Source: Octopus sinensis (Eukaryota). From it: 64,000 nucleotides of DNA. The DNA lies in contig NC_042999.1 in assembly GCF_006345805.1 (NCBI RefSeq), positions 42,160,001-42,224,000 of the forward strand. Direction: 5' to 3'. Below, piece after piece: positions 28,690 to 30,530 of the stretch. The notes beneath the pieces were generated by a model. It searched no databases and was not told the DNA's origin. It saw only the letters and a list, made by a program, of their open reading frames with translations. The number at the start of each line of letters is the position of its first letter. Position 1 is the first letter of the stretch. The translations under genes were made by a program, and so were the position numbers.

Positions 28690-29593
28690 TGTGCCACGGT
28701 TTCCTTGAGCCACCCGAAAAGAAGCTGCATTAAATAAAAAGAGCTGCAATAAGTAAAATTTTCTTTACTGCAAGGCGTATGACACCAAACGTGTTACATC
28801 TGATCATGAGCAGGTTTCCCAGCATGTGGGAATATCCAACACAAGTGTCAATGTGAGATATATTGGTGACAATGTTGATTCCTGGCTGGTGATCATATTG
28901 TGGTACAATACTGTCAGGTAGTTAGTGTAGATATAATTTTCGGCAATATGTATTCGAGTGGGTTTACTATAGGGCTCATAATCTCACAAGTCTACAAAAC
29001 AAAACAAATAGTGCGCATTGTAGCGGGTGCTGAAGAACCCCTAAACTCCGCATCCAGAGTAGAAAGTCCAGTTATCAAATATGTGGCAGTAAAAACCACT
29101 GTCGTGAAACCCTAAAGTAACAGAAACAATAACAGCTTATGCATATTAATGGTCCTAAGGCAACTCCGAGAACATTGCTCTGAGTTATGTACTCTCTCCC
29201 TCTCTCTACCCCCTCTCCCTCTCTACCCCTCTTTCTCTTTCTCTCTTCCAGCATCAACCGGCAGTGTAAGACATTGATAATGTTAAGCACACAGCATTAT
29301 TGATTTCCAATTTTGGTTGATGGTGAGTATGTTCAGGGGATTATATCGACCCCAGTGTTCAAATGGTACTTATTTTTTCGACCCTGGAAGGATGAAGAGC
29401 AAATTTTGGAACAAGGCCAGCGAGTTCGAGGGAGGAGGTAAGCCGATGACATCGACCTCAATCTTCAGCTGGTACTTATTTCAATTGAACCTCGAAAGGA
29501 TGACTGGCAAAGTCGACCTCGACGGAATTTGAAACTCAGAACGTAAACACGGACGAAAGGCCGCTAAGCATTTTACCGGGCATGCTAACGATT

Positions 29594-29848
29594 TTTATTT
29601 CTTTATTGCCCACAAGGGGTTAAACATAGAGGGGACAAACAAGGACAGACAAAGGGAATAAGTCGATTAAATCGACCCCAGTGCTGGTACTTAATTTATC
29701 TTAATTTAACTGGTACTTAATTTATCGACCCCGAAAAGATGAAAGGCAAAGTCGACCTCGGCGGAATTTGAACTCAGAACGTAACGACAGACGAAATACC
29801 GCTAAACATCTCGCCAAGCGTGCTAACGTTTCTGGCAGTTCGCTGCCT
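29594..29848 (-). mobile_element. Full-length SINE family B (tail variant 1), 3' half of the U6 chimera
   Basis: aggcagcgaactgccagaaacgttagc head through ttgtgggcaataaagaaataaa; internal 17-bp duplication at about 29684-29726. Confidence 0.9.
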
Positions 29849-29899
29849 AAAAAATGTGGAACGCTTCACGAATTTGCGTGTCATCCTTGCGCAGGGGTC

Positions 29900-29932
<33 letters not shown>

Positions 29933-29952
29933 AATATGTACCGCCGTAGCTA
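29849..29952 (-). pseudogene. U6: U6 snRNA retrocopy, near full length
   Basis: Minus strand reads ...GCTACGGCGGTACATATTCTAAAATTGGAACGATACAGAGAAGATTAGCATGACCCCTGCGCAAGGATGACACGCAAATTCGTGAAGCGTTCCACATTTTTT. ACAGAGA box and AGC triad are intact; a few 5' nt are missing; no upstream U6 promoter. Confidence 0.97.
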
Positions 29953-30530
29953 GCTAACGATTCTGCTAGCTCACCGTCTCCCAACAATAGTGATACTGAG
30001 AGAACTAATTTGACAGGAAGACTCTTCTCATAGCAGTGTTGCTTCTATCCACTTATAAGGATTAGGAAGATAGGGATGCCATAGACAACCGGCAAATTAC
30101 GAAAGAAGACTTATAAAATGTGATTAAAACAAGTATGAAAAGTAGTATGCCTCAAGGAAAAGCGAAACCTCCAGTTAGGAGAGTATATCGTGCGCAAAAA
30201 GCCCATTTCTCGTGAAGTGGGGATCCTCTTCACGAAGAAGAATCTCTTGTGAAAATTTTCTCAAATTAGAAGGAATGAATATTCTCCTGCCCGATTGAGA
30301 TGATCTCCACAGGCATTCAAAAGGCCAATAAAAATGTTATGGAATACAAATATCAACTGGAAGAGTACGATGCAAAGTGCTGATCAGAGAGTAAGGAAGA
30401 ACAAATTATGTGTGTGTGTGTATGTGTGTAGTAAATCTAAAAAAAATAAAGAACAAACACAAAAAAGCAACAACGCGAGGACGTGGTATATGTGAAGTGT
30501 TACTAGACGCTCTTGGAAGAAAAGAACGAT

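Follow-up and report, generated by a model that had tools for sequence, protein, structure and literature searches.

A probable U6 snRNA-SINE chimeric retrocopy inserted into an older SINE of an octopod genome

Chimeric retrocopies in which U6 snRNA is joined to a retroelement have been described in platypus, where the partners are L2 and the SINE Mon-1, and in Anolis carolinensis, where they are L1-, L2- and RTE-like LINEs and, in six cases, AnolisSINE2 (Doucet et al., 2015; PMC4476161). The same paper, with reference to Buzdin (2003) and Garcia-Perez (2007), mentions U6/Alu and U6atac/Alu chimeras in humans as rare. The architecture common to the chimeras with L1, L2, RTE, Mon-1 and AnolisSINE2 was ascribed to template switching, and switching to U6 was concluded, from a survey of vertebrates only, to be a general property of non-LTR retrotransposons (PMC4476161). 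By the account given there, template switching during reverse transcription had been proposed by Buzdin and by Garcia-Perez. In a second route, by prior ligation, U6>P is joined to 5'-OH RNA by RtcB, and this ligation is strongly reduced when a 5'-triphosphate replaces the 5'-OH of the acceptor (Moldovan et al., 2019; PMC6789731). The original prediction for the locus described below had named only the mammalian U6/L1 chimeras as the known precedent; U6-SINE chimeras had already been published (platypus, Anolis and the rare Alu cases), so the novelty of the locus is lower than was then implied (PMC4476161). No report of U6 chimeras in molluscs or other invertebrates was found in the literature, the coverage of which was incomplete, and the present U6-SINE chimera is possibly the first in a mollusc.

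The locus lies in a window of 64,000 nucleotides of Octopus sinensis DNA (the whole stretch that was analysed, hereafter the 64-kb window), and the coordinates of its features are listed in Table 1. Read along the minus strand from 30030 to 29230, unique sequence is followed by the head of an old SINE, the U6 copy, a young SINE, AATCGTTAGC and what remains of the old SINE, as far as about 29430.

Table 1. Features of the U6-SINE locus and target-site duplications of related SINE copies in the 64-kb window.
Feature	Position	Strand	Basis and remarks
5' target-site duplication copy, AATCGTTAGC	29953..29962	-	100% identical to 29584-29593; abuts U6; end of older SINE head
U6 snRNA retro-pseudogene, 104 nt	29849..29952	-	RF00026; some 3-5 nt at the start of the 5' stem apparently absent, 3' end intact
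U6 3' oligo-T, six T, forming the SINE junction	29849..29854	-	Read directly
Full-length SINE, 255 nt, AGGCAGCG... to ...AATAAAGAAATAAA	29594..29848	-	BLAST and MAFFT against four other window copies
3' target-site duplication copy, AATCGTTAGC	29584..29593	-	Directly after the A-rich end of the young SINE; older SINE resumes
Older interrupted SINE, head (GAGACGGTGAGCTAGCAG...)	29963..29980	-	Aligns to the 5' end of the family
Older interrupted SINE, body	29430..29583	-	BLAST of joined flanks; 76% identity to young SINE
Target-site duplication TTACGTCTACTAACTT, 16 bp	58565-58550 and 58315-58300		Copy at 58549
Target-site duplication GGTATATCA[C/T]ACAGCGT, 17 bp	45811-45795 and 45562-45546		Copy at 45794
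Target-site duplication TGATGCTTAT, 10 bp	16775-16766 and 16548-16539		Copy at 16765

The U6 copy was detected by an Rfam scan of the 64-kb window as a minus-strand match to RF00026 at 29957-29850 (103.3 bits, E=9e-26; gathering score, 44). Model positions 1-105 were covered and the U6 3' end was complete (105/105). This bears out the prediction of a near full-length U6 on the minus strand, but about 3-5 nt of the 5' stem appear from the sequence to be absent, or to be masked by a microhomology of 1-2 nt. Bases 29957-29953 (UUAGC), placed by Rfam at U6 positions 1-5, are the same as the right-hand repeat and as SINE sequence and are therefore target-derived; two of the five stem pairs that they would form in the Rfam alignment are non-standard. 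Sequence that is certainly U6-derived begins at 29952 (UAGCUACGGCGGUAC...), and the microhomology would consist of the last 1-2 nt (GC) of the 5' repeat copy, which could also match U6 positions 3-4. Within the 64-kb window no Rfam match other than U6 was obtained, nor any further U6 fragment by BLAST.

When the 75-aa stop-to-stop frame across the junction was searched against proteins, 117 matches were obtained, all of them antisense-U6 reading frames of other organisms. A G>A change within CAUGGCCCC of the U6 copy gives Val in the antisense frame, at a site that is Ala in 106 of the 117 frames and Val in none (0/117). The SINE sequence was absent, in any frame, from all 117 matches, which came from many organisms. 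Exact-protein look-up of the junction-spanning frame and of a nearby LINE frame gave no record. No TATA-like element was seen near -30 of the U6 copy, where SINE sequence is found instead. With its 5' stem replaced by target sequence, a substitution at a conserved site and SINE sequence upstream, the copy lacks the attributes of a functional U6 gene; the U6 part is a dead pseudogene, and no function is expected of the U6-SINE product.

As had been predicted, the U6 copy ends in six T (29854-29849) and is followed directly, without filler, by the A at 29848 with which the SINE starts (AGGCAGCGAACTGCCAG...). Both parts have the same orientation (minus strand). The claim that the fusion lies at the first base of the SINE stands in part: the SINE is full length to within 1-2 nt and filler is lacking, but the position is exact only to about 2 nt. 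Window copies bounded by their own target-site duplications begin AAGGCGG (58549), AAGCTGG (52632) and GGCGGCG (16765), and the SINE of the chimera begins AGGCAGC; in longer form the 5' starts read AAGGCGGCG (58549), AAGCTGGCG (52632) and CGGTGAGC (45794, slightly truncated). The SINE of the chimera is thus one A shorter than two reference copies (AGG vs AAGG). Judged from the three delimited copies and their AAGG/GG heterogeneity, position +1 of the SINE RNA is uncertain by 1-2 nt.

The 3' end of the young SINE, ...GGGCAATAAAGAAATA plus AA, corresponds to the ...GGGTAATAAAGAAATA of the family, and the divergence of the element from a crude consensus of five copies is 7.7%. A 17-nt unit, GATAAATTAAGTACCAG, is duplicated inside it with a spacing of 26 nt (29726-29710 and 29700-29684, minus strand); the internal duplication was not present in any other copy. 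The SINE had been described as tRNA-derived, which was not confirmed: ARAGORN reported no tRNA in the window, nor on the SINE consensus under relaxed settings, and the Rfam tRNA model gave no match at E<=10 on the SINE of the chimera or on the best-preserved copy. The element carries no more than a B-box-like sequence, GAGTTCAAATTCC (with 3 mismatches, or with 2 and an indel), and some weak sites of A-box type. No literature match was found for the SINE sequence, and scans of metagenomes with the U6-SINE junction pattern and with the SINE core each gave 0 matches.

The 10-bp repeat (plus-strand form, GCTAACGATT, at 29584-29593 and 29953-29962) is identical at 10/10 positions, and its two copies border the composite directly on either side. 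The prediction that it splits an older SINE of the same family held: with the insert and one repeat copy removed, the flanks line up gapless with the SINE family through the junction and then read ...GAGCTAGCAGAATCGTTAGCATGCCCGGTAAAATGCTT... against ...GAGCTGGCAGAAACGTTAGCACGCCGGGCGAAATGCTT... in the family. Together with its repeat copy, the head of the older SINE occupies 29980-29953 (GAGACGGTGAGCTAGCAGAATCGTTAGC); the 3' part of the body resembles the copy at 16765 and is of a different subfamily. The duplicated 10-nt segment is single-copy in the SINE family, and the equivalent site within the young SINE (29822-29831) is 90% identical to it. In this microsatellite-rich 64-kb window, pairs of random 30-nt windows shared a word of at least 10 nt in 1.8% of trials. 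Since the repeat lies exactly at either end, represents a doubling of what is single-copy in the SINE family and leaves a target that rejoins, the probability of a chance occurrence is negligible. The 10-mer occurs four times in the window, the two further sites being 16749-16740 (a SINE-subfamily motif) and 51341-51332 (apparently by chance).

A second repeat pair around the SINE alone, which would speak for separate insertion, was searched for and none was found: the 30 nt on either side of the SINE share no word of at least 5 nt. No repeat pair abuts U6 alone. The word CGTTAGC was considered as a U6-only duplication and rejected; it is shared through SINE-SINE homology and, being 22 nt inside the young SINE, does not abut U6. 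It was also considered whether two overlapping SINE fragments could take the place of a duplication. That reading needs a 3'-truncated 28-nt head together with an exact 10-nt overlap, and it is disfavoured because retroposition does not produce a 3'-truncated head of 28 nt.

Directly after the old SINE lies a further SINE core fragment (29406-29339, minus strand; CATCCTTCCAGGGTCGAAAAAATAAGTACC...GGGGTCGATATAATC), and the region is a pile-up of SINE insertions.

BLAST with the 255-nt element identified related minus-strand copies at 58549-58316, 52632-52399, 45794-45563 and 16765-16549, plus fragments. The family is thus represented in the window by five near-complete copies, about 230-255 nt long and each with clear ends, plus fragments. 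In addition to the duplications listed in Table 1, the copy near 52626 has its own duplication of about 5 bp (TATTT). The duplications of the other window copies range from about 5 to 18 bp, every delimited copy having one of about 5 bp or more, so that a length of 10 bp is nothing unusual for this machinery. In a 21-kb locus of Argonauta hians no U6 was found and the SINE core was matched once, weakly (71% over 121 nt), which added nothing to the definition of the SINE 5' end.

At 52632-52237 (minus strand), within a (GTT)n microsatellite, the full SINE (52632-52399) adjoins a 5'-truncated SINE of another subfamily (52398 to about 52237, ending GTAGAAAAGAA). By its sequence this pair looks like a nested sequential insertion and not a chimera; in contrast to the U6-SINE locus, the upstream SINE has its own short duplication (TATTT), as would be expected of sequential insertion. 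The copies at 58316/58565, 45563/45811 and 52399/52640 end ...AAAGAAATAGG, and their duplications start GGT (or G[G/T]T). Either GG is part of the SINE 3' end, or GGT microhomology selects or primes the target; the chimera has AA at this place.

No LINE with the 3' tail of the SINE (...GTGGGTAATAAAGAAATA) was found in the window. LINE reverse-transcriptase remnants are present at 37803-38693 (plus strand) and 1590-2147 (minus strand), neither with the SINE 3' tail. The first is a 296-aa frame, the best named relative of which is from Argonauta hians (60% identity over 96% of the query), followed among named matches by crustaceans at about 40%; the second, a 185-aa frame, matches RVT_1. A 125-aa frame at 60408-60785 (plus strand) matches the GIY-YIG nuclease domain (Pfam PF01541, E=2.4e-5) and may be what is left of a Penelope-like element. 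The whole window is very densely set with microsatellites and low-complexity tracts (among them CA/TA, GTT and CAT), for example at 2288-2716, 6675-8686, 15551-16110 and 32257-34899, which give long spurious reading frames.

A single outer repeat pair, and none around either part, argues that a U6-SINE chimera was inserted in one LINE-mediated event. That U6 and SINE were inserted as one unit, as originally predicted, agrees also with their common orientation, the lack of filler and the rejoining flanks, and on this anatomy we consider a single insertion event very probable. The locus conforms to the U6 chimeric retropseudogenes of Group IV ('associated with repeats'; Doucet et al., 2015) in orientation, in the 3' ends of U6 and of the partner, in the one duplication round the whole chimera and in having the rejoined target within the window.

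The account that we think probable is a single retrotransposition by the LINE that mobilises the SINE, with an end-to-end template jump from the SINE RNA to U6. The LINE endonuclease would nick the older SINE; reverse transcription, primed on the 3' tail of the SINE RNA (...AAUAAAGAAAUA), would proceed to the 5' end or to within 1-2 nt of it; the reverse transcriptase would then jump end-to-end to the 3' oligo-U of U6 and copy nearly to the U6 5' end; and attachment of the cDNA to the upstream end of the target, in which 1-2 nt of microhomology may have helped, would leave the 10-bp duplication. An end-to-end template jump is favoured by a junction that lies at or next to the SINE 5' terminus without filler.

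The strongest rival places the fusion before reverse transcription: U6 with a 2',3'-cyclic phosphate and the SINE RNA would be joined by RtcB or another ligase, and the product copied in one pass from the SINE tail. Such ligation has been demonstrated for human U6/L1 (PMC6789731), and the intact U6 3' end, the lack of filler and the single duplication are explained equally well by it. It meets a difficulty at the acceptor: RtcB requires a 5'-OH, a Pol III primary end carries a 5'-triphosphate, and the junction, unlike the random internal sites of U6/L1, is at most 2 nt away from the primary Pol III 5' end, which fits a template jump better. That ligation needs a 5'-OH had been pointed out in the original prediction, and the poor performance of a primary 5' end as an RtcB substrate agrees with published work (Moldovan et al., 2019; PMC6789731). 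The AGG of the chimera, against AAGG in two reference copies, makes a 5'-trimmed SINE RNA conceivable, and the AAGG/GG heterogeneity at +1 means that the junction could sit 1-2 nt inside the RNA, which leaves room for a processed 5'-OH and ligation. A single locus cannot settle the choice between ligation and template switching; on the evidence given we incline towards template jumping rather than prior RNA ligation as the origin of the fusion, and rate the ligation-first account as unlikely.

Two independent insertions, of which the second (U6 or SINE) exactly abutted the first and left no duplication, are improbable. Some LINE clades leave very short duplications or none, those of platypus L2 chimeras being of 1-9 bp and present in only 72.5% (PMC4476161), and a 1-nt duplication ('A') round the SINE is possible. 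Against this stand the absence of a second repeat pair, the duplications found at every delimited SINE copy of the window, and the need for base-precise adjacency in the same orientation, for which we estimate a prior of about 4e-4 (from about 10 SINE copies per 64 kb).

It is more improbable still that a SINE lay directly behind the terminator of a U6 gene and that a Pol III read-through U6-SINE RNA was retroposed via the SINE tail. The same architecture would be expected, and the near-complete U6 5' end is compatible with such a transcript. The source, however, needs a SINE inserted after a U6 gene with zero spacer and no duplication, and no such locus is present within the 64-kb window. A run of six T is moreover an efficient Pol III terminator, which counts against read-through.

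The reading without any retro-insertion, namely a functional U6 gene with a downstream SINE, or a repeat that arose by chance or as a SINE-internal coincidence, is scarcely credible: the U6 score is high and the 10-mer is a SINE-subfamily motif with four occurrences in the window, but the 5' stem is incomplete, the G>A change affects a site conserved in 106/117 U6 loci, SINE sequence without a TATA-like element at -30 lies upstream, and the repeat abuts both ends of an insert whose flanks rejoin into one SINE.

The locus extends U6 chimeric retrocopies, so far a matter of vertebrates and, by analogy, of one fungus, to a mollusc, and supports the capture of U6 during LINE reverse transcription as a general property of non-LTR retrotransposition. 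The position of the junction at or next to the primary SINE 5' end adds a little to the debate over template switching and RNA ligation; a lone decayed locus, by itself, is without functional consequence and alters no model. It may be suggested, tentatively and with some doubt, that cephalopod LINE reverse transcriptases routinely jump from the exact 5' terminus of Pol III SINE RNA, end-to-end, onto the U6 oligo-U. If so, the U6-SINE chimeras of SINE-rich cephalopod genomes would form a natural data set with many 5'-triphosphate junctions, by which template jumping could be separated from RtcB ligation, and U6 would associate with LINE ribonucleoprotein particles across bilaterians.

The closest counterparts are the platypus U6/Mon-1 and Anolis U6/AnolisSINE2 chimeras. 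As in these, U6 is in 5' position and in the same orientation as the SINE, its oligo-T runs straight into a SINE with the 3' tail preserved, and one duplication flanks the pair; the slight 5' truncation of U6 is also often seen in platypus. The SINE partners in platypus and Anolis are mobilised by non-L1 LINEs. The present chimera differs in its octopod host and in its SINE family and partner LINE. Its junction is placed at or within 2 nt of the SINE 5' terminus; the main text of the vertebrate study gives no junction positions (PMC4476161).

With the mammalian U6/L1 chimeras (Moldovan et al., 2019, PMC6789731; Buzdin, 2002, 2003; Garcia-Perez, 2007) the locus shares the order U6, oligo-T, retroelement, the single duplication and the lack of a U6 promoter, and template switching and RtcB ligation both apply in principle. 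The mammalian partner is a variably 5'-truncated L1 with poly(A) and an internal junction, whereas the partner in the present chimera, a full-length Pol III SINE RNA, lacks a long poly(A) and is joined at its terminus.

Chimeric retrocopies that contain a SINE are also known outside mammals from the WEIRD/Mg-SINE/MGL LINE combinations of Magnaporthe grisea, which have direct repeats on both sides (of 14 bp for the tripartite element) and were ascribed to LINE template switching (Gogvadze et al., 2007; PMC2104539). Unlike here, the 5' partner is a fungal non-coding RNA, and switching occurred at specific internal sites (PMC2104539). SINEU elements, finally, resemble the locus in that an snRNA sequence acquired a LINE-dependent tail, template switching being the probable route (Kojima, 2015; PMC4494074). 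They are amplifying families with U1 or U2 heads (PMC4494074), and membership of the U6-SINE composite in a multi-copy U6-headed element is a more remote possibility than the routine jumping suggested above; in contrast to SINEU, what is found here is a single copy with an internal T6 terminator and a U6 without external promoter, no new SINE family but a chimera that was dead on arrival.
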